64,000 nucleotides of DNA from Entomortierella parvispora E1425 (GCA_020891255.1 BQFW01000002.1:186001-250000); one strand, 5' to 3'. Positions 12,622-37,000 are shown, numbered from the stretch's first letter. A program made the numbers and translations. The notes: a model not told the origin generated them from the sequence alone.

Positions 12622-12783
12622 TGGATGGGGCCGATGTTGCTGGCATAGCGTAGTGATCCTGCGCCCTTTTAGCAAAATGAGGATACCTCTCACAGTTCTT
12701 TTCCAAAGCGACAAGGGCACATCGCTTACAGTTGGACTTGAATGTGTAAAAAACTTCGTAGTCTTTATTATATTTTGTTTTTT

Positions 12784-22800: not shown

Positions 22801-23628
22801 CGATCAAACAACAATGACACGCACATGATTGACACTTTGTTCTGCGGTGGAAGAACCCTCGACGGCTCGATTATAATTTGCTCAGGCCAGATTTCTTGTG
22901 CCCAAATCTGGCAACGAAACTGCGGAAGAGGCGCATCCAGTCGAAAAAGGAGCACAATTGCCCCATTGCACTCAAAACAGAATAACGATCCGCGGCACTA
23001 AAAGGAGGACCAGGGTTCAAAATGACCTCAAAAACAAAGAAAAAAGAACAAAAAGAATTCTCCGCGTCAACTCAAGATGCACGGCATGCAAAAATTGCCC
23101 TCCACACTGAAAAAAAAAGTCAAAGGCGATTGGGGTCAACAACGTGCACGTCCAAGGCACTGGCGATGATGGAGCAGAAAATGACTGAATGACTGACTTG
23201 CCGACTGACTGACCGACCCGCAGGAGGACACTGACCACCCTCTGACTGACGCTGTTTCAATAATGGCTGCGCGCTTGGGTATAAAAATCAGCAGCGCCTT
23301 CAACCGTCTTCACCTCTTTTTTTCGTCTCTCATGCTTCTCTCTCTTTCACTTTTGCATCTGTTATTCTCCAGAATACAGCTTACCCTCATTCACTCTTGC
23401 ATCTCACATACCTCATTGTTCATTTTTTTCGTTTACTGCATCCTTCGGCAACGTTCAGTTTCTCGTCTTCCAACTGCTTTCGCCTTCTATCCCCCTCGCG
23501 TCTATCCCGTCACCGCTAGATCAACACACCGTCTTCTTGTCAAAGCGACTCTCCACTATCTCTCTTTGTTTAACGTAGCGCAAAGCCACTCCACGACCCC
23601 CCCCCCCCTCTCCTTGTATATATCAGCC

Positions 23629-25887
23629 ATGGGCCACTCTAATAACTGGTTCTCTGTCCACCTCGACAAGCCCTATGTCGTGATCCCTTCCTCCACATCA
23701 TCAGAAGCACCATCAGAAACAGCACCCACAAGCACACCAGCAGACTCTGATCCGGACAGAGGTCGAGTCAAGGGAACTGTGGTCCTTCATCTCACCAAAC
23801 AAACAAAAGTCAAGTCGCTCTCTATTGTGTTCTCGGGCCTCGCCCGAACAGCCTTCTACTTTGATGCTTCTCGAATCCAAGGATCAAAAGAGTGTGTCGC
23901 CACAGGTAAAGTAAAGCGTCATCGATCATTTTTGTTTTGTTGCTGCAGCTTGGTACAGATTGGGACAAGTTGAGGCAGTTTACTTTGCCGAAGGATATTT
24001 TCAGCTGGGGCAAGAGAGAGACAGGGCGTAGGGGGCCAGTTACCCCGACAGTCTATGATCCGGGGGATGAATGTTCAAGGCCAGCAGCACCATGCCTTAT
24101 TAGTTGAACGCTCCACGTTTGTAACCGATTGACATCATCTCGAATCATTTGTGTGGTCGAACTTTGGTACGACCACGATTGATTCCACTAAAGGCAGAGA
24201 GGGCCGACTCTTTCCATAGACTTGTTTGTGTCTATGATGTGTTGCGGGTGCAAAAAAAAAAGATCAGAGAGCAGTGGTTCTGGGTGGTATGTGCATTTTG
24301 AGAGACATGGATCCGATGCAGGCACCTTCAGGGGCGTTTGATTCACAAATAGTGCAAACAGCGACAAAATATGCCTCATTTGGGCCAGGAAAGGAACGCT
24401 TCGTGGTTTTTTTTTGCTCTTGCTTACCTGCTGCGGGCAATGGAGCCATTTTTATCTTTTTTTCTTCAATGCCACGCACAAAGGGGTAGTTGGTCAGGGC
24501 GCAACGCAGGGGAACCGGAGTGAATTAAAACTGGACCAGACCCATCGGAGTAATAATAGGATCCCTGGGGACATGTATTATAGAGAACTTTTTTTTTCTG
24601 ACACGCGTCATTCTTCCTCCCGTCTTTCACCCTATAGACAAGAGCACGTTCAGCTGCTCTTTGGTCCACGAAACCGAGTCGCTCATCGTCACCGAGCCAA
24701 AGAATCCATTGGTCCTTCCAACTGGCACACACACCTTCCCCTTCTTCTTTGCCGTCCATGAATCATTACCAGCTGTCGTCTCGTCGCGGCCGATTTGTAT
24801 CAATTACCAAGTGACAGCCTCCCTTCAATTGATGTCGCTTTTGCCTTTCACCTCCCCTTACCAATCCACAAAACCCGTCATCCTGATCCACAAGGACGAA
24901 GATTTGAATGAGGACTTGTTCAACACGAGTTGCTTACGATTCACCTCCAAGACCTCGGAGAGATTCTCGGGTCAAGTGAGTTTTCCTTGCAAGGTTCTAC
25001 CTCAGTCGGGCACTGTCCCTCTGATGTTGAACCTTAGTCTGAAGGGCAATGCCACCTCCGTCAAGAGGCTGACGATCGAGCTTTTGGAGTCCATATACGT
25101 GTTGGCCGGTGGTGATGAGGCAGAACCTTCCTCAGAGATCCTCGTGGATGAACGACTTGTCTCTCGTCAAAACTGTCCCCTTCAGAACTGGCCCACCTCT
25201 ACTGTTGAAGAACCCGTCACGATCCCCAAGCGATTGATGTTCAAGATCCCACAGGCACCGCTCAACAATTGGTCCAACATTGATTGGGAGGTCACCCCAA
25301 CATCCTATCGGGCGAGTCTCGAAAAGGGATTCTGTCACACGTCTGGACGTCTGGCCACTGCCAATACCCGGGTGGCCCACTGCATCCGCATCTCGATCCA
25401 ACTCCAGGGACTGACGTGCGACCAAGAGTCAGAGATCGAATTTGACTCTGCAGAGAACGAGATTGAGGTCATGATTGTGGGCCATCAAGAATACAAGGAC
25501 GATGAGTCCCATCCACCCAGCTACTATCGATCCTTCACCACAGAACTGGTCGACGGCGCCAAGATTCACGAGATTGACCGACAGGCCATCGAGGCTCTTC
25601 AGGACGAGCTTCCGCATCACGCTCACTGCGGCCGTCATGAGGGCGGCAATACTATGCAATTGCCCAGCTATAATGATATTTTCGCCTGTGCCTCAAACTC
25701 TTCGCAAGCTTCCGGTTCTTCATCTGCATCGTCGTCCAGAGTCACTTCTTGGACGGGTCCTAGTCAAATCAGTCTTGACCAATACTCATTAGCGGAGAGT
25801 ACGGGCAGTCAAGATTCGTATTACGCCAACCTTGCAGCCTACACTGCAAGGTATTCTAACGGCTCTGCAGCCGTGTATGCCTCCTAA
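23629..25887 (+). CDS. Alpha-arrestin (arrestin-related trafficking adaptor)
   Basis: Exons 23629-23905 and 24638-25887 (732-nt intron, 508 aa). GRVKGTVVLHL..KVKSLSIVFSG and LPTGTHTFPFFFAVHESLP are arrestin-N-like; PY motifs PPSY and LPSY lie in the tail. Confidence 0.85.
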
Positions 25888-26103
25888 TGCATTCAAAGAT
25901 AATGAAAATAAAAAATAAAACAATGAAAAAAAGGTCCAATTGTGGTCTGTGGTCTGTGGTATGTTATTTTCTCCTGTTCATCATCAATGAGATCGAGAAG
26001 TGAACACAGACATAGCACAGCTGAGAGGATAAAGAGTCATTGGTTTTTTTTTTTGCAATTTCAAAAAGAAAAAAGTGACAACAAAAGAGTTGGTGTTTAT
26101 TCT

Positions 26104-27110
26104 TTAAGCACGCTCCTTGCGGTCACCGCGGGGGCGGCGGGTCTCGACGGGGGCCTGCTTGACCTCGACGGCGGAGACACCGGCCAACTCCTCGAAGTTC
26201 AAGGACTTGAGCAAGTTCTGGGTCTCGGTATCGATCTCAATAGCAGAGGTATCGAGAGCAGAGAACTCGGGAATGTAGTTGTCCTTGCGCTCGCGCTCCT
26301 CCTCCTGAAGCTTGAAGGAGATACCACGGACGGGTCCGCGCTGAATACGCTTCATCAAGTGGGTGGTGAAACCAGCAATCTTGTTACGGAGACGCTTGGA
26401 GGGGATGATGGCGACCTCGGAAGCAATCTTCTTGTTGGTCTGGAAGTCCAGAGTCAAACGAGGGTAGTACTTCTCGATGAGGACCTTGGAAGCCCTCTTG
26501 ACAGTCTTGGTACGAACGCGACCCTGTTTGCAAAAGAAAAAAAGAAGAATCCAGAGGTCAGTTCAGCTGATCGGTTTGCTGAAATTGTGATATCGTAGAG
26601 TCTGCCAAGGAATTGCTCCTGCTGTTGTTGTTGTTGTAGTCGCTGCAGTCATTGTATTTATTGTAGTTATTGCGGACGGTTGTTACTGCTGTTGTAGTTG
26701 CCTTCCGATGCAGATCAACATCTCGGCAGTCTTTGAGGAAAGAGCCTCTTAGAGGAGCCGATCCTGATGCCTGTAACTTCCATTGCTGATGGTTGTGACT
26801 CCTTGGATCTGTTGTAGGTAAACACTGCAGCGACTTTCCCAAAGACGGAGGCTGGCATCCGTTTGCCTCTGATGTTGCCATGTGAAGACTGAAGAGTCGC
26901 CCCGAAAAAGTGATCAAGTCAGGAATGGCTGAAGAGCGAGCGGGGAGCTGTTTCCACCACCCGTAAATCAGTCCAACCCCTCCAAGATGCCATTCTGAAT
27001 CGGATGCAGTGATCGATGGTTGCTGAATCGCCCATTGTCCCGATGGATGGTATCCTTCGTCGATGGATGCCTCCTGTGTTGCACTCTGATTTGGCAGCGT
27101 GACTGACCAT
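26104..27110 (-). CDS. RPS17: 40S ribosomal protein S17 (eS17)
   Basis: ATG-only first exon (27110-27108, ccaaaATG|gtcagt), 584-nt intron, exon 26523-26104: [58 protein letters not shown]. Confidence 0.97.
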
Positions 27111-28537
27111 TTTGGATAATTGATTTGAAAGAGGAGGTTTGATCCAAACCGAGCGCACAGAGCGAACGCCTATATCTCGGTGATAGACCCTTAATGGAAA
27201 TCTTTTGAGACAGTTGGTGGCAAATCCACGTCGCTTGGTGGCTCTGAGTTGCTGGTTCCTTTGCATGTGTGGCAAGATGAACTCAGCCTTCACTCAAACA
27301 AAGGCAGTTCCCACTGTCAGCCTCTCTCTTTCCGTTACTGCTGGTCCTCCTGGTTGTTACTGCTAGTCCCGCTTCCCCTAATTGCGTCTGTGGTGCTGTG
27401 TGCACTCACTTTTTTGTTCTCTGCCAATCGCAGCGAGACCAAAAAAGGGGTTCTTCCTCGCAAATCGTGCAATGCATTTGCACCCACAGCCGCGCGTCAG
27501 ACAGCCCATCCTTTCTTTGTCACACCTGGGGATGCGGAAGAGAATCCAGAAAAAAAAGTACTGGGGACATGCCGGGATTCCTCTGTTCTTCTCTCCATCT
27601 ACAGTAGTTGAGCCTCGTTTTTTTTTTTTTTTTTTTGAGTGCCGAACAGCTGAAGTTTTCTATTATTTCCTGCACAAGAGATGCCAAGAGGACAGAGAGC
27701 GAATTGCAAAGAGGTACGGTACGAGAGGAAATTGAAGTTTGGCGTAATCGCATCGTCTCGCTTTTTCTCGTACAGGCACGACCTGCGCCAAATGAATCCA
27801 AATAAACAATCGATCCCTGGACAGAAATAGCAATTGCTGGCACACGACCCGCGAGCGGAATTTGTCCTTTTCTTTTTCTTGCTCTCAACTCAACCTTGCA
27901 CCACAAGGCAAGCCACACGACACATTCTTTTTGCCCTTTCACCAAACAAACCCTTACGGGAAGGGGCAGCGGACTAAAATAACAACCCTCTTCCTCACAC
28001 GAGCTGCCAATATCTCGTGCAAGAGCCTCAATTGGCCGAGGAAGTACCTGAACTGGAGCAAGTGCAGTCTGCCCACGCCCACTTTGTTCTTTCTTTTCTC
28101 CTCTGCCAAAAAAAAAAAAAAAAAAAAAAAAAAACAACCCCCACCTCCCATCCCCTCCCCAACCCTTCTCCTGTTTCGACCCTCTGTCTAAGGGTCTTTT
28201 CTCCAAGCCGCTCCCTGCTTCCACATTCGTCCCTTTCCCGAACCACCTCCTTTGGTGTCTCTGTTGAGGTAAAGATGTTCAGACAGTTGCACTAGTCGCG
28301 CAGCGCCTCGTTGTTCATGCACGAGGCCCACAATAGCAGACGAGCAGGTTCGGTACGGCGCCTTGCCTTCGCCCACCTGCCGTCTTGCCGCACCCTTTTC
28401 GTGCTTTGTTCTTCTTTTATCTCATCCATTCTTCCATTTTTACCTTTACCAACAATCTAAAAAAGAACAGAAGCGCGGACAAAGACCTGCATCAGTCCGA
28501 TATTAGATCATAATACATTTGTCCAAGAGATACCACC

Positions 28538-30002
28538 ATGTCGACACCCTTGTTTGATTTACCGACACAGCAACAGGAGGAGAAGAGAGGTGGTCGTTCT
28601 CAACTCCAAACGGCTTCCACAGTAGACCCAAGCACTTTTCCTTCAGTGGCCAGTCAACTTCAAAGCAATTACAACAACAACAGCCATAACAAAAACAATA
28701 CCGACTCTTCTTCTTCTCCCTTTTCCACTAATACCGCGGCTTTTCATTCACCCTACGGTGGGCTTCAACAAGACATTAGCGTCCCCCACGAACAAGGACA
28801 AGCGTCCTCCAGTTTTCCCTCTTGCTCTTCACCATCGGCTCCACAACCCTCTTCTTTCTGGACACCACCACCATCTGCTCAGCATCCCTCACCCTATCAG
28901 CCATCGTCGACCAGCCACCCCAGCAACGATCACCCCTACCAACAACAACCTCCAGCGACTCGTTTGACAGGTGACGACCACCAGCCAACGGCAACAACAA
29001 CCTACCCCTGGGCGATTCACTCGGCTACATCTTCTGTCTCGGTCTCGGATTTACCTAACGCGACGCCTACAGCGACGACCACCTCTCGCTTCCATCCTCA
29101 GCGCTACTCTGAACGCCGTAAATTAGTCCAATCGTTCCAATCCTCGGTCGATTCGTCTCGAGCACAAACCCCCGTTGCCATGGATTCACGACCTCGTCTT
29201 GGCCTGTCCAACAATGGTGACAACCATGATAACAACAACAAGGGGATGTACCTCCCTTCAGGGACAGAGGAAGCCCGTTTTTCACGCCAGTCACTTGAAA
29301 CTCTTTCCAACTCGCGGCCTCTTTCCCCTGTATTGAACAAGACAGCCAAGAAGCCGTTCTGGATGTCGTTCCCCCGTCGCTTCCGGCCCAAGGGCGCCGT
29401 CCGACCCAAAAAGTCCGACTCGTGGGGAAACAAGAAGGCAAAGTTCTCGAACGAGCGAACCTTGGTCCATTGGATCAAGGCAGCCATGTTGCTGGGTTCG
29501 TTGTCCATGACGCTCCTGTCGTTCAGCGAGAACAATGTGACGCCCTATATTGGCGCGGTCCTCATCACGATCTGTTGTTTGACCTTGGTCTACTCGGTCA
29601 CGACCTTCCAAGTGCGGATGGAGTGGATTGATATGCGGAGAGACGATGTCGTTTATTACGATAGAAAGGCTCCCACTGTCCTCTCAGTGTTGTTGATGGC
29701 TACATTTGCATTCAATGCCGTAGGTATGTAACAATTGGAGAGCGAGAGAGCGAGAGAGAGAGAGCCGAGTCGCTTTTTTTTTTCTTTGTTTTTTTTTGCG
29801 TCGTGTGGTGTCTGTGCCTGTGCCTGTGCCTGTGCCCATTGCTTTGATTGTTGTGCCTGGAAAGAACCAAATACGTTGTTCCGGTGTCCATTTATTTCCT
29901 CTTTTGACTGACATCCCCCTCCTCCTCTCACCTCTAGTGACTTATACGGGCGACTTCACCTCCAACAAGGTCTACCTCCACAAGAAAGGCTTTGACGGCT
30001 AG
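28538..30002 (+). CDS. VTC-type DUF202 three-helix membrane protein (Vtc1-like domain) with a ~300-aa disordered N-terminus and no SPX domain
   Basis: Exons 28538-29723 and 29938-30002 (416 aa). KAKFSNERTLVHWI..LLGSLSMTLLSF..YYDRKAPTVLSVLL parallels the VTC NERT..W and DR.GPT.L motifs. Confidence 0.85.
29813..29836 (+). repeat. (TGTGCC)4 hexamer repeat in the DUF202-gene intron
   Basis: tgtgcctgtgcctgtgcctgtgcc read directly. Confidence 0.85.
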
Positions 30003-30605
30003 AGGATTTTTTTTTTTTGGCCTCCCAACACATACACAGCTTTTCAATCTTTTTGCATTTCTTCATCTAATCTAAAAAAAAAAGGGTCTCTCTGGCTCTG
30101 GCCCTATTTCATCGTCCACAGAACCATAATAAACTTTTTCTTTGGCCTACTTCCCTGTTTGCAATTGAAATAGTGTGCGGAGCCTTGCTCTGATATGAGG
30201 GCAAGCGGACAATTGAGAAAGCTTTTTGATGAGCAAAAAGACAGATGGACCGTCAGGACCCGTCAAGTTGTGCAGGTAAAGAGAACTGTCTTGAGGGGAA
30301 AAAAAATGCATTTACTTTCAAAACTGGACTATGAATCTGAGTGTTTCCCCAATCTTCTCCTTTCACTCTTTCTCTTTCATCTATCTACTTTCATTGGTAT
30401 TATGTTCGAAGGGGAAAAAAAAAGAAGACAAAAGTAAAAGAAATATACTCTCAACCCTACTCTTTTTTTTTCAGAGAGAAAAAAAAGGAACGGGGAGGGC
30501 ATGTGGGGGTAATGTTGTACGGAAAAATGGTGGTGATGGGTGATAAAAAAGAAAGAGCGAGGGAGAGGAAGGCGGCGACGGCTTTTTCATTAAGCCTGTA
30601 CAGCC

Positions 30606-33600
30606 TTACGCTCCTGTGCTGATCTTGCTGGGGGTGTTGGTCATGATGAATTTTGCTATATTCCCAGAAAAGAGATGAAGAGAAGCGTTAGTGGACCGAT
30701 CAGAATAAAGTTCGCAAACAAGGGGGAAAGAAAACCAGAGATAACAAGGCACGCTATCCCAATGAAGCAGGAAACTTACTGTAGAAGTTCAAGAAGTAGG
30801 CACCGAACAAGAACACACACAAAACTGTGGGTCCGATACGGTCGTGGAACTGACGGTTGGGCTTGGTCGACAAGATGTTGGACAAACGGATGTGGAAGAT
30901 ACCCAAAGCGTACAACATGGCCAAAAGAGTAATCACCGTCAACACTGCTCCTGAGAGCTTTGTCATGTTGGTTCCAAAGTTCAGCAAGGTCAATGAAATC
31001 TATCGTTACAAAAAAAAAAAAAAGTTTCATGGTCAGACGCCATCGCTCATATCAAGGTAAACTCCAAGACCTTCGAAACAGTTCTAATTTTCTTTTTGGT
31101 TTGAAACTTACAGATCCAAGCAAGACAGAGAATTGGAGCCAGTTCAGGAATGTACGCTCGTTGGCAAAGAACACCTTGGGCTCCATCCGCACGGGTGCCT
31201 GGGCACGCTTGGGTGCTGTGGACGTGCGCTTCTCACGGAATCCGAACCGCTTGCGACGAATCGTCGACTTTTTGCGCAAAAGACCCTCGTCATTCTCATT
31301 GTTGCCATTGTTGCCATTGTTGCCGTTCATGTTGTTGTTCTTCTCGGTCATGAAAGACTCAGATCCCAGAGACAAATGTGAATCCCGGTTGTTGAGGCGA
31401 TCGATCCAGGGTCTTGATGGTGGTGCCATCAGGGCCTGGTTGGAGACTGTTGAGCCATTGTCAACCAAGGGATGAGACCCTGTCACGCTCGCCTTTGAAG
31501 CCACACCCAAGGGCTGGTTATAAAAGTTGGTTGGTTCAGCAGGGCGGCGGTTGGCATTCTTCTCGGCCATCTTTTGTTGATATGTGGCCTTGTCCATTGT
31601 CTTGGGGATCTTGGGCTCAAACTCTGACAAGGACTTTGCGCCTGCCACTGTGGATTCTGAACCGCCCTCGATCAAGGCTCTAGGAGCAATTGGTGGACGC
31701 AAGTTGATCTGAGGTGTACCCACGGGCCAAGCACGGGGTAAGAACGAAGTCAAGCCGAAATCAGTATTGGGGGGCTTGCGAATATCCTGATCCATCTGGG
31801 GCAACCAGAAGGGCAAGATCTGGATCTTGTCTTCCAACAGCGTGGCCACACCGTGAATATACTTTGAGAACCTTGGGCAGGACTCGACCAAATGTGAGTT
31901 GATCAGCTCCACAATCCAGGCTGGGGGCTCCTGTCCGTGATGGGTCTGAAGCTTGACCTCCAAGACGGCATAGGGGAAACGGGTGATATCCTCTGCGGGC
32001 AACTGCTTGAAAGGCCAGTCAATACCGATGTCCTCACGCTTCCAGTTGTTGCCTGCACGGGCCCTGCCACCATAGTCATCCTCACGAATCAAAGCCAACT
32101 CGGTGTCCAAAGAGATACGCACACGGGCATCGTTATGGAGCTGGAAAGCAGTACGGCGGTAGAACGCACGGATGGTGGGTCTCATCTTCTTGGTGACCAA
32201 ACTCTTTTGGACATCGTTGGCGAGCTTCTGCATGACCTCGACATCCTTGACAGACTTTTGACCACGGGAGCGAAGTTTGGCAAACTTGACATCCATGGTA
32301 TAATCGCCCGAGAGGTAAGGGTTGATGTACTTTGTCTTAATGGGGAATCGCTCCTTGACACTCTGCTCGCCCGTCCACTTTTCACGATGGACCTTGCGCT
32401 CCAAGAAACATTGGCCGTTCTCGGTGGGCATTGGTCCGTACCAGCGGATACGAATAGCCTGGGCCATGTCCGACTTTTCCAAACGTCCTTGGTAACACTC
32501 AAAATCGTCCGAATCAACATAGACTGAGGAGATGGCCGAGTCGTTCTCCTCATACTCCTTCTTAGTGTTGAAAACCAGGACGGGGAGGTGTTTCATGATG
32601 ACGAGCTTGACCTCGGTAATGTTGTCGGGATGGACCCAGTACTTTGTGGTGTCACGCACGAACGCGTTCGAGTCCCAGTTGGCGAACTGGTCATCGCCCT
32701 TAAGCTTCTGGCCACGAGCCGTGACGATATGGTAGATGGAGGAGAGGCGAACGATGACGGCATCGTAGTTCTCCTTATGGAAGGGCTTGGTGTTGAGTCG
32801 GACGTGGAAGATGGACTTGAGCATCCATCCGGTTTGTTTCTATTTTTACGTGGCAAAGGTACAGGTACAAGACAGGTACAGGCACAGGGCAAAAGGGAAA
32901 AGAAGCGTATTAATATCAGACTCTCATGCAATCCAGCTGCGGTAAAAATAAACCTTGAGGAAATCACAAGTCAGCTCGGTAAGACCCAAGGTGTGGTGCC
33001 CCGTTCCCAAGTGCGCGTAATCGAGAAAAACACGAGCAGAAACAAAAACAGGTGCGTTTGCCGACAGGGGGGGGGGGGGAACAATGGCCGAAAGAGAAGG
33101 GTGCCCAGGAGGATCCCGAAGGGGGGGGAGAAGGACAGGAGACAGACGGAGACGGGGAGAGGCACTGCCACAAGCAAGGCCTGGGTCAAGCAGGCCATCA
33201 GCCAGCGTCGGGCCCATAAAAAAAAGAAAGAGTCGGGGGGCTAATCGCCCAGTCTGGACGATCAGGCTCTCCTGTTCTTTTTTTAATACCACGCTCATGG
33301 CAGACAGGCCGCAAATGCAATGAGAGCAAGTCCGTTTTCGCAAATCTGTCGTGTGGTGCAATCGCGGGTCTTTTTTTTTTTTTTTTTCCCTTTTGGAAAG
33401 GGGTTGCATGGCCTTGATCCCTTGTCGGGATCTGGAGGGGGGACTGGAGGATTGGAGGGAAGGGGGGGGGGGGTTTCTTCTCTCACTCATTCTTTCTTGC
33501 GGTCGTGTGGTGTCGATTGTTACAGGTCAAAGTCTGGTCGTGTGCAGTGGCTGTGTTGGTGTGCGTGTGTTTGCCGGGAACATATCTTTTTGGTCCCTTT

Positions 33601-34075
33601 TTTTTTTTTTTTTTTTTTTTTGCCCAAGCCCACCATTCAAACAGGGGAGAGAGTAAGGGAAGGCAAGTCAATTGAGGGGGGGGCAACTTACATCGTGCTT
33701 CTTGACGATCTTGAGGAATCCGGTATAGTTGAGGCGAGTGTACTTTGCCAACACATCGATCTCGGCCACCAATCGGTACAGCTCGATTTCGAGTGCCCTC
33801 CACGTCTCCTCCTCTGCTCCATTTCTCTTGAAATCCTGAGCCTGGGTGCTGTAGAAGGAGAGCTTGCGGTGGACCTCACCAATCTTCACGTTCTGGAAGC
33901 TGTAGACCTTCTCCAACTCACGTTCGAGCAACTCTACAAAGTAGCCCTCGTCAGTCTCGGTCCAGTGCTGCATGGCCGTGCGGGTCTTGAGCACGTTCTT
34001 GAGTTCGTCATAAGAGATGTAGTTGAAGGACCATTCCGGTTGAATGGACTCTTCTAGGTGCTGTCCAAACTTCAT
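30606..34075 (-). CDS. VTC4: Vacuolar polyphosphate polymerase Vtc4 (SPX + TTM polymerase + DUF202)
   Basis: Exons 34075-33692, 32839-31112, 30999-30780, 30655-30606 (793 aa). SPX: [28 protein letters not shown]|K. Catalytic motifs [41 protein letters not shown] region [14 protein letters not shown]. The last exon is less certain. Confidence 0.95.
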
Positions 34076-37000
34076 GGCAGTATGTGTGTTTCAGAGATGA
34101 TCTAGTTGGGATGAGATGAGAAAAAGAGACGATTGCGTGTGAATGGGATGAATGGGAAGAAACAAGGGAGGGAGAGCGAATGGCAGTTGGGTATGACACC
34201 ATCCTCTGCACTAGAGCCAAACGCAAAAACAAGCAAGCGCGCCAGCAGGCACGCAGCAGAGGCCTCTTTTTTTTGGTGTTGCTTTTCAGGGACAGGGCCA
34301 ACAACACACGAACGAAACGCCAACAGACGGCCAAACAGACACACGACAGAAATTAAACACGGCGAAAGAGGGGGAAAGAGGCACACGATGTGGACGGGAC
34401 AAGGTCACGAGGGGTTGTTTGGTGTGGAGGGAAGGCGGGGAGAGCACAGAGTGGCCGGGAGAGGTGAGGCTTTTGGTCGGTTGGATGGCAAGTGAGCTGC
34501 GGTTGGGAATGTGGTACCTGGAAGGACAAGCGAGGGCTGAGGGAATAAGGTGATGATGATGGGGGTATTGGAACAAACGAGTGAGTGACGGAAGGGAGAG
34601 AAGGGGCGGGAGGAAGAAGGATAGAGAGAAAGAGAGAGAGAGAAAGAGAGACAAAGAGTATGCAAGGGAGGAGGGCGAGATAGAAGAGAGAGCTGAAGAG
34701 AAGAAAAGAAAAGAGAAGAAAGAAAAGAAAGGAAGAAAAGAAAAAGAACGACAGAAGGACAAGAAACAACGACGGCGGAAGAGAGAGCAAGAGTTGGGCA
34801 AGAGATGTGATGTGTCAATTAGTTTGCAGTCAAACTGAACCTCGTTCTCTTCCTGGGCAAGAACACGAACCAAATGTGTAAAAATAAAGACCCAGCGCCT
34901 TTCTTCTTCTTTCTCCTCCCCTTCCTCCCTCTCTTTTCTCTCTGTCTCTTTCTAATATGTACGGACCCAACATAAAAAGGACGACGAACGGTTGGAAAAG
35001 TGACCGGCCTTGCCAATGCCCAGTCGGTGACGATCCTTCCTTTTGAATTGTCATTGGTAACAACAAATATTGTTCCGGTTCATGGTGATCACTCTGCAAT
35101 CCTTGTTGCTGTTGACTGTGAGGTAGAAGGGAAGACGGGGTTCCTTTCTTTTCTTTTTTTTTTTTTAAAAAAAAGGGTACAGCCAACAAGGATATACCCT
35201 CGCCTCTGCGGAGAGAAACAGAGCCAAGGGATGGGGATCGGGCTGGGGCATGGACCACGGCGGACACAGTTTGAGCCAGGCAGGAAAGTCAGGAAAGAAC
35301 AGCGGTAAAGGCAATGATGGGGGCAGTAACGAGATAGAGGACGGGAACAACATCATCACCATGCGTTGCCATCATGGTTGTCAACGATGGAAAGATCGCG
35401 ATCGCCTGACGCCTGACGTGGGCAAGTAAGAGGGAGGAGGTGAATCCCCGGAGCAGTGCCACGGACAGTGACCTGGTATCGTCCTCCCCGTCTCTTTCGT
35501 CTAGATAGTCCTGTCTATCACGCACGCTAGCAGCAGGGATCAATTGCCCAAACCAGACACACAGAGCCATCCAAAGTCCTCAATTGCTCTCAACTACACT
35601 GTTTCTTTCCGCCTGCGCGCGATATGAATAGCACGAACGCACACGACCAAATGAAAAATAAAATAGAAGAAACAGCTTTGTGTCGTGTGCATGCCAGGGT
35701 AATAATAAATAGAATTTAGATTATAGCCCGCTCAGACTCCCTTTGGCCCCTGTCGTCTCCTCCACTCTATGCCAAGTGCTGTCTGACCAAATGCAGGTTT
35801 TGCTCATGGGGTGTACAATCCTCGGGTCGTGTTTTTTTTTGGTGTTGCACCAAAAACTTGATCCCAGGATTGGGCGCAAATCTCATGTTCTCCACACTCT
35901 CTGCGCTGCATCGTGATCAAACACGCCACCCGGAAACAACACCCTTTCTTACTACACCTCTCCTCTCTTCAAGGAGACAAAATCTTTACACGACTACCAC
36001 ATACCAGAAGGCGCGCGTGAGCCAGAAAAAAAAGTATCACAACCTGGATCAAGTTCCTGAAAGGTTGGAAGGAAAAAAGGGAGAAAATCCGAAAAAAAAG
36101 TAGGAGGTGGATTGCATTACAACGATAAAAAAACTGAGACTGAAGAGAGAAAGACAGAGTTGATGTTCAGAACACGGGGAGTTTGCACGTCAGTCGTCGG
36201 AGGGTCTGCTCCATCCGTGGTCGACAGGATAGACGTTGAGTGCGCAGATGGATAGAGCTCGGATTGGTAATTGCAGGGCACGCTACAGCAGATATCTGGT
36301 TGACTGGATGAGAAAGTTGGTCCTTACCCTAAAGTTTTAGATTAATTGATCGGGGTGGTGTGAAGGTGTGTGTGGATCGGCGCGAAGAAAGAAGAGAAGA
36401 GTTGTGGACGCGATGCAGATGCAATAATAAATGCAAAAAAGTGAGGCTGGTGGTCAAAGTTGGGTACTTGAGTGCAACGTATAATGTGAAAAAAGGTATG
36501 CTGGGGAGATGCAGGGGACGGTGGGAAGAGGCAGCTAAAGAGGGAAGAGACCAATGCCGGGAGGATGCAATTGGGAGACGAACGAGCGAACAAGAACGGT
36601 GGAGAAAGAGAAGAAAAGAGCAAAAGAAAAAAAAAGAAGAAAGAGGTAGAGCAAAGAAGGAAGCAGGAAAAAAAGAGTGCAGGCGAAACGAGGTATCCTT
36701 AGGAAGATTGTTCGAGGGCTTCGTCTCGACTATTCAAAGGGTCAAAGCGGTCAAAGCCGAGGTTGGTTCATCCTCCAATACGTTAAACCCACCCAACACA
36801 GGGTATGTGACAGGGGAGCCTGGGGCAATCCCTTCGTACTCGTGTATCCTCTCCTCGCACAGGGGATATAGACAATACAAGTAGAGCGATCTTGGCGGCA
36901 AAGTTGTGTCACAGTCGAATGCTCTTCCGCACTGGTCGTATTCACGACGGGATTCCCATCTGCGCTGCTCTTTTTCTCTATTCTGCACTCTTTCCGCGCT

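Follow-up and report, generated by a model that had tools for sequence, protein, structure and literature searches.

What kind of protein is encoded beside the polyphosphate synthase gene of Entomortierella parvispora? The complex named vacuolar transporter chaperone (VTC) is, to our knowledge, the only known eukaryotic polyphosphate (polyP) synthase, and the logic of its subunits (Vtc1, Vtc2/Vtc3, Vtc4 and Vtc5) was derived almost entirely from yeast. Mortierellaceae are abundant fungi of soil and rhizosphere with roles in phosphorus cycling. In a 64,000-nucleotide stretch of the E. parvispora E1425 genome (GCA_020891255.1, BQFW01000002.1:186001-250000; the window), a VTC4 gene lies tail-to-tail with a gene, here called gene A, whose product ends in a DUF202 membrane domain. 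The coordinates and architecture given for this pair in an earlier reading of the DNA (the original prediction) agree with our gene models, which match EMPS_00926 (gene A) and EMPS_00927 (VTC4). That reading treated gene A as a single atypical gene; judged by its phylogeny, it instead belongs to clade I of a family that comprises, within Mortierellaceae, five or more paralogue clades. We see an even chance that gene A encodes a Mortierellaceae-specific, membrane-domain-only paralogue of the VTC channel protomers, a "Vtc1-like IDR subunit" (IDR, intrinsically disordered region) that would sit as a protomer in a VTC-type ring and carry a disordered tail.

Gene A spans positions 28538-30002 of the plus strand and encodes 416 amino acids in two exons; the model was rebuilt from the sequence, and its translation is 100% identical to the deposited protein P0001. 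Exon 1 (28538-29723) is an open reading frame (ORF) from the ATG through codon 395 and the first base of codon 396, and it specifies three successive regions. Residues 1-265 (28538-29332) are 55% Ser, Pro, Thr, Gln and Asn, with hydrophobic residues scarce, and the next 37 residues (266-302; 29333-29443) form a polybasic juxtamembrane patch with 13 Lys/Arg and one Asp/Glu, in agreement with the long Ser/Pro/Gln/Asn-rich disorder and basic patch previously predicted. Residues 303-395 (29444-29723) comprise the first transmembrane helix (TM1) to most of the third (TM3) of a Vtc1-like membrane domain, recognized by Pfam, by phmmer and by the fold of an AlphaFold2 model. A phase-1 intron of 214 nt (GTATGT...CTCTAG, 29724-29937), found at the same position in the orthologues at loci L001, L002 and L003, precedes exon 2 (29938-30002), which supplies the end of TM3, a 20-residue tail and the stop codon (30000-30002); the spliced product is P0001.

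The N-terminus, MSTPLFDLPTQQQ, is kept in the closest orthologue, P0002. Orthologues total 230-480 residues, and their N-terminal regions vary around the short conserved islands YPW, SxASS and RRRLIxS, the sequences of which fit linear motifs. Across clade I the patch reads FWxSFPRKFSFRPKG..RPKK.DS.GNKKAK, in which F282, R283 and P284 are invariant, and the motif TYTGDF..NK in the C-terminal tail is likewise kept in orthologues. The mean predicted local distance difference test score (pLDDT) of the whole protein in the ESM Atlas is 0.50.

Several lines of evidence place the membrane domain among those of VTC subunits. The only Pfam match of gene A is DUF202 (PF02656; 36.9 bits against a cutoff of 23.4); Pfam found neither an SPX nor a VTC domain in P0001 and no domain at all in its N-terminal region, and NCBIfam gave no match. 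When the C-terminal 110 residues were compared with the PDB by phmmer, yeast Vtc1 ranked first (E 5e-8), followed by the membrane domain of Vtc4 (2e-5). An AlphaFold2 model of residues 255-416, built from a 71-sequence family alignment, has a mean pLDDT of 81 and three long helices (296-328, 335-366 and 377-399). When this model was compared with the PDB by Foldseek, each of the top 13 matches was a chain from a yeast VTC complex (7YTJ, 8I6V, 9UMG), and it superposes on the Vtc1 chains with TM-scores of 0.74-0.86 and root-mean-square deviations of 1.6-2.5 Å. The domain as modelled is thus a three-helix Vtc1-type fold, and the best matches, both in sequence and in fold, are yeast Vtc1 and then Vtc4 and Vtc3, bearing out the claim that this DUF202 gene is of the VTC type.

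The residues that build the channel point the same way. In cryo-electron microscopy structures of the yeast complex, K24 and R31 of Vtc1 form two positive pore rings, and E30 and R83 form an ionic lock between subunits; this lock is strictly conserved across Vtc1-4, and polyP synthesis requires it (PMC9911596; bioRxiv 10.1101/2023.01.27.525886). Their equivalents in gene A are K300 (K24), E306 (E30), R307 (R31) and R360 (R83), and the last three are invariant among 13 gene A orthologues. In 86 aligned domains of the wider family, the E30 and R31 equivalents are each present in 84, the remaining two being gapped at both columns, and the R83 equivalent is present in every one (86/86); the K24 equivalent occurs in 54 of the 86, gene A included.

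That wider family emerged from an exhaustive HMMER search over 1.84 billion representative sequences, which returned 404 matches; the best 150 of these were examined, and the range of the family outside Mortierellaceae was judged from them. About 87 of the best 150, each a cluster at 50% identity, form one clade of proteins of 200-1136 residues that share a single design, a long low-complexity N-terminus followed by a C-terminal DUF202 domain. No SPX, TTM or other Pfam domain besides DUF202 was found in family members. All members with a named source (more than 30 proteins) come from Mortierellaceae. In IQ-TREE analyses the family is monophyletic (100/99 support) and divides into five paralogue clades, with gene A in clade I. 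Single species carry members of several clades, and E. parvispora itself has a second member, EMPS_06014 (P0100), in clade V. Signatures of the family are FSNER instead of FANER, HW and YYDR, and clade V (P0100, P0091, P0085, P0096, P0064, P0136, P0111) has in addition a basic insertion of about 25-45 residues in the cytosolic TM2-TM3 loop. The TM3 of clade V (DRIGPTVLC...AY..NFY) resembles that of VTC4. Database entries call these proteins hypothetical or DUF202, or carry the automatic names "vacuolar transporter chaperone" and "phosphate metabolism transcription protein". We found no earlier description of such paralogues in the papers searched on DUF202/Vtc1, on Mortierella and VTC, or on the cryo-electron microscopy of Vtc5.

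Adjacency to VTC4, which had been put forward as a synteny check, is conserved, and is a property of clade I alone: a clade I gene is paired with VTC4 in all six genomes examined (6/6), the window included. The direct DUF202(+)/VTC4(-) pair occurs in E. parvispora, E. chlamydospora, Mortierella claussenii, Mortierella sp. GBA30 and Actinomortierella ambigua. The only break in direct adjacency was seen in Linnemannia elongata, where the two are separated by an inserted old-yellow-enzyme (Oxidored_FMN) gene (L001:12470-14203). A block of arrestin, RPS17e, DUF202 and VTC4 genes is common to the window, E. chlamydospora, M. claussenii and Mortierella sp. GBA30, and in A. ambigua, the deepest branch of clade I, the pair is kept although the upstream neighbour differs. 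The data suggest the same arrangement in two further species. In the window, the upstream neighbours (23263-26457) are an arrestin-like gene on the plus strand (to about 25887) and, on the minus strand, the gene for ribosomal protein S17e (exon 26104-26457). A 913-residue model from Haplosporangium sp. Z 27 (P0351) fuses VTC4 with ribosomal protein S17e; this is probably an annotation artefact, because a fusion of this kind has to run across the site of the DUF202 gene.

Gene A and VTC4 both have a phase-1 intron exactly 17 residues past the Pro of the PTVL motif, as had been noted: in each gene the donor lies 52 nt past the first base of the Pro codon (17 codons plus one nucleotide). Clade I orthologues and VTC4 orthologues have the intron at the same position, and so, at the DNA level, do the unlinked clades II, III and IV; in clade V the sole sign of it is a stretch of residues read through in some of the gene models. 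Outside Mortierellaceae, Lichtheimia ramosa Vtc1 has a phase-1 intron there, with GC-AG borders (L008:3376-3440), and other Mucoromycota-like Vtc1 sequences carry read-through signatures of the same intron. The original prediction had taken the shared intron as direct evidence of common ancestry and as suggesting an old local inverted duplication. Because it also occurs in unlinked paralogue clades and in Lichtheimia Vtc1, the intron alone is no proof of a local duplication, and we rejected the argument as stated. On the sequences compared, the phase-1 intron is old within VTC membrane domains. It is not universal among them: the canonical Vtc1 gene of E. chlamydospora is intronless (L004:6001-6429) and hence lacks it, the VTC4 gene of A. 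ambigua has lost it (L010, minus strand near 12709), and the Vtc1 intron of Rhizophagus lies eight codons earlier. The deposited L. ramosa model (P0168) reads through the GC-AG intron and acquires a false C-terminus, CKYILFHPCRA; when spliced, the protein ends in LRLGGTDV, comparable to LRLGTDV in L. ornata (P0167).

Where, then, did the family come from? In three trees it attaches beside the membrane domain of Mortierellaceae VTC4, and the attachment branch rises to 96-99/89-93 support when one further VTC protein is added. Approximately unbiased (AU) tests rejected a grouping of the family with Mortierellaceae Vtc1 (p 0.007) and marginally rejected one with fungal Vtc1 (p 0.034). In both the family and Mortierellaceae VTC4, the TM2-TM3 loop is one residue longer than that of Vtc1; we also count for a VTC4 origin that the shared intron is present in VTC4 and missing from E. 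chlamydospora Vtc1. The gene A and VTC4 membrane domains of the window are 36% identical over 72 residues (tblastn E 2e-11). Identity calculated per group fails to separate VTC4 from Vtc1 as the source (clade I, 33% versus 29%; clades II and IV, equal). The clades branch in a ladder-like order, IV, II, V, (III, I), which is the pattern expected of a resident copy that repeatedly spawned dispersed copies.

Taken together, tree topology, the AU tests and the loop length in common give modest support to the membrane domain of VTC4 as the source, and we lean towards the view that the family arose by an inverted partial duplication of VTC4. In the ancestor of Mortierellaceae, the 3' part of VTC4 that encodes the membrane domain would have been duplicated in inverted orientation, giving the founding copy, and a copy resident beside VTC4 would then have seeded the dispersed paralogues. 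The proposal of an old local inverted duplication thus finds modest independent backing in the trees, tests and loop length, while the intron offered in its favour is not specific to the pair.

Because the ring-forming and ring-locking residues are kept, we infer that the gene A protein may take a protomer position in a pentameric VTC-type ring alongside Vtc4 and Vtc1. From its sequence, a role as a VTC subunit can be proposed, and the family is probably a source of additional subunits for the polyphosphate channel. In such a ring, the positive-inside rule and the topology known for VTC would put the patch and tail at the cytosolic mouth of the channel, beside the exit of the Vtc4 catalytic tunnel for nascent polyP. 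In that position they might retain or steer the anionic chain, or bind inositol pyrophosphates or acidic lipids; alternatively, the tail could be a handle for phosphorylation or for partners that tunes gating, activity or localization. In yeast, the tuning of VTC falls to the SPX-bearing Vtc2, Vtc3 and Vtc5. A bolder version, which we regard as unlikely, is that at least five modular pore protomers with differing disordered tails, all born from the inverted partial duplication of VTC4, swap into the VTC pentamer and yield separate synthase/channel complexes, distinguished by their compartment, their gating or the signals they receive.

The main rival to a subunit role is that the family assembles into DUF202 channels of its own, homo- or hetero-oligomeric and separate from the VTC synthase, which in other compartments might act as anion or polyphosphate conduits or as membrane scaffolds; location or partners would be set by the disordered N-termini, and adjacency to VTC4 would be a relic of gene birth. 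We judge this possible, if doubtful. It would accommodate a family of five paralogue clades of which four are unlinked to VTC genes, its long stem branch with signatures of its own, and the E30/R83 lock residues, which suit a homomeric ring equally well. Several observations weigh against the reading of gene A as a VTC4-derived VTC subunit, whether or not they favour this rival. (i) Clades II, III and IV do not adjoin VTC genes. (ii) The convergent, tail-to-tail layout provides no promoter in common, and the adjacency may have been kept only through origin and general synteny, given that arrestin and RPS17e are conserved as neighbours as well. (iii) The K24 equivalent is lost in 32 of the 86 family domains. 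(iv) The membrane domain of gene A is just 26-38% identical to any canonical VTC membrane domain, which makes the compatibility of subunit interfaces uncertain. (v) As to origin, the shared intron also occurs in Mucorales Vtc1; the branch that attaches the family beside VTC4 has 80-97% bootstrap support in the three trees but just 19-71% in the Shimodaira-Hasegawa-like approximate likelihood ratio test; and the signal comes from about 108 alignment columns with both lineages on long branches, so that long-branch attraction is possible. The VTC-independent channels are in turn opposed by the strong constraint on pore and lock residues that are specific to the VTC type, by the nearest relatives, which among the best 150 of the 404 matches are all VTC-type membrane domains, and by the persistence of the gene pair in A. 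ambigua, where the upstream neighbour differs.

Two other explanations fare worse. That gene A is simply the ordinary Vtc1 of the lineage, its start mis-called or its N-terminus extended, might be argued from a membrane domain closest to Vtc1 among solved structures, from the automatic name "vacuolar transporter chaperone" on some database copies, and from the long N-terminal extensions of Vtc1 orthologues in Kickxellomycotina. A search with Lichtheimia Vtc1, however, recovered a canonical Vtc1 of 126-154 residues, about 65% identical to Mucorales Vtc1, in many Mortierellaceae, among them E. chlamydospora, E. beljakovae, Mortierella sp. GBA30, Actinomortierella, Gryganskiella and Dissophora. 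Because this short protein exists in the lineage, gene A is not its ordinary Vtc1; the two are about 29% identical, and the N-terminal ORF of gene A runs continuously from a conserved MST start and contains conserved islands. Together with the AU test against Mortierellaceae Vtc1, these findings led us to reject a wrong start, and we hold an ordinary Vtc1 in either form to be highly improbable. Least credible of all is a DUF202 protein of the bacterial, YidH-like type that has no relation to VTC, or else a duplicate in decay and without function. Pfam does give just the generic name DUF202, and some relatives bear the automatic JGI label "YidH (DUF202 family)". Yet the best 150 of the 404 matches are eukaryotic and VTC-type, the top ones all having the eukaryotic VTC motif and fold; this is an informal test of the YidH grouping, since the trees were built without bacterial YidH. 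The explanation is also contradicted by conservation: between genera of Mortierellaceae the membrane domain is 45-87% identical and many of its columns are invariant, the ORF is intact, and the splice sites are kept.

Two observations concern other VTC proteins. The extended Vtc1 orthologues of Kickxellomycotina, P0098 (Spiromyces aspiralis) and P0110 (Mycoemilia scoparia), have low-complexity N-terminal extensions of 100-200 residues on an otherwise canonical Vtc1 domain, and are an independent case of N-terminal extension. Three 743-residue SPX-VTC-DUF202 proteins of Podila (P0356, P0357 and P0359) have membrane domains that group not with Mortierellaceae VTC4 but with the Vtc1 of Glomeromycotina, and may represent the Vtc2/3-type subunit of the lineage.

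The partner gene, EMPS_00927 (P0077), was likewise rebuilt from the sequence. It lies on the minus strand (34075-30606) and encodes 793 residues in four exons, with SPX, VTC and DUF202 domains in Pfam. Exon 1 (33692-34075; 128 codons) encodes the N-terminal part of SPX and is followed by intron 1 (32840-33691; phase 0, 852 nt). Exon 2 (31112-32839) encodes the end of SPX, the catalytic TTM/VTC domain (Pfam VTC, E 6e-78), a linker and the start of TM1; it scores 520 bits against yeast Vtc4 versus 204 bits against Vtc3, and by this comparison EMPS_00927 is a true Vtc4 orthologue. Intron 2 (31000-31111; phase 0, 112 nt) lies within TM1, where gene A has no intron. The rest of TM1, TM2 and most of TM3 are encoded by exon 3 (30780-30999), the part matched to the membrane domain of gene A by tblastn, and intron 3 (30656-30779; phase 1, 124 nt), the one at the position common to gene A, separates it from the last 16 codons and stop in exon 4 (30606-30655). 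All three introns read GTAAGT...AG. We assigned splicing in both genes from consensus sites and reading frame, from the identity of the products with the deposited protein models, and from sites that five other genomes conserve. Intron 1 is homopolymer-rich and 4-8 times the length of the other introns in both genes (112-214 nt); we found no Rfam match and saw no conserved ORF in it. In the 603-bp spacer between the facing stop codons (30003-30605) we found neither an ORF with homologues nor an Rfam match, and the whole of 26000-36000 is likewise free of Rfam families. Neither was a Pho4-type CACGTG motif found near gene A or VTC4, nor coding sequence for SPX or TTM elsewhere in the 64-kb window.

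What is new here is a family of Vtc1-like paralogues with disordered tails beside the known VTC subunits; the membrane domain itself is of a known type. If these proteins are indeed VTC subunits, a lineage-wide, strongly conserved radiation of tailed pore protomers, one of them beside VTC4, would mean that the composition of the channel is more plastic than the yeast model implies, and the family would offer concrete candidates for the tuning of polyphosphate storage in Mortierellaceae. Should the protomers prove modular as well, they would add to VTC regulation a layer that is independent of SPX and is not known from any model fungus. Their proposed origin would also illustrate how a new gene family can arise when part of a gene, a 3' end that encodes a domain, is duplicated.

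How does gene A compare with the systems already described? As the original prediction had recognized, it fits none of the yeast subunit classes. Vtc1 (yeast Vtc1/Phm4, Schizosaccharomyces pombe Nrf1) is a membrane-only protomer present in three copies per VTC pentamer. Gene A resembles it in having neither SPX nor TTM, in its three-helix fold and in its equivalents of K24, E30, R31 and R83. Unlike Vtc1, it has a cytosolic extension of 300 residues, made up of the disordered region and a polybasic patch with a net charge of +12; it is about 29% identical to the lineage's own Vtc1, and its family stands apart as a separate clade (100/99; AU p 0.007 and 0.034 against the Vtc1 groupings) from the fungal Vtc1 proteins of about 120-155 residues, has FSNER, HW, YYDR and the longer TM2-TM3 loop, and coexists with canonical Vtc1 in the same genomes. 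With the membrane domain of Vtc4 it shares 33-38% identity, the position of the phase-1 intron, the length of the TM2-TM3 loop, a neighbouring place in the tree and physical adjacency in inverted orientation, but it has no SPX, no catalytic TTM and no phase-0 intron in TM1. Like Vtc5 and Vtc2/Vtc3, gene A joins a VTC-type membrane domain to a large cytosolic N-terminal part that is potentially regulatory. In Vtc5 that part has an SPX domain and in Vtc2/Vtc3 an SPX and an inactive TTM domain, whereas in gene A it is predicted to be disordered, with no recognizable domain: SPX was not found, and neither SPX nor TTM precedes the membrane domain in P0001 or upstream in the window. Finally, the VTC binding partners of kinetoplastids, VBP1-3, are lineage-specific proteins added to a Vtc1/Vtc4 core (PMC13375126); although unrelated to gene A in sequence, and neither DUF202 proteins nor pore protomers, they set a precedent for lineage-specific additions to the VTC core.

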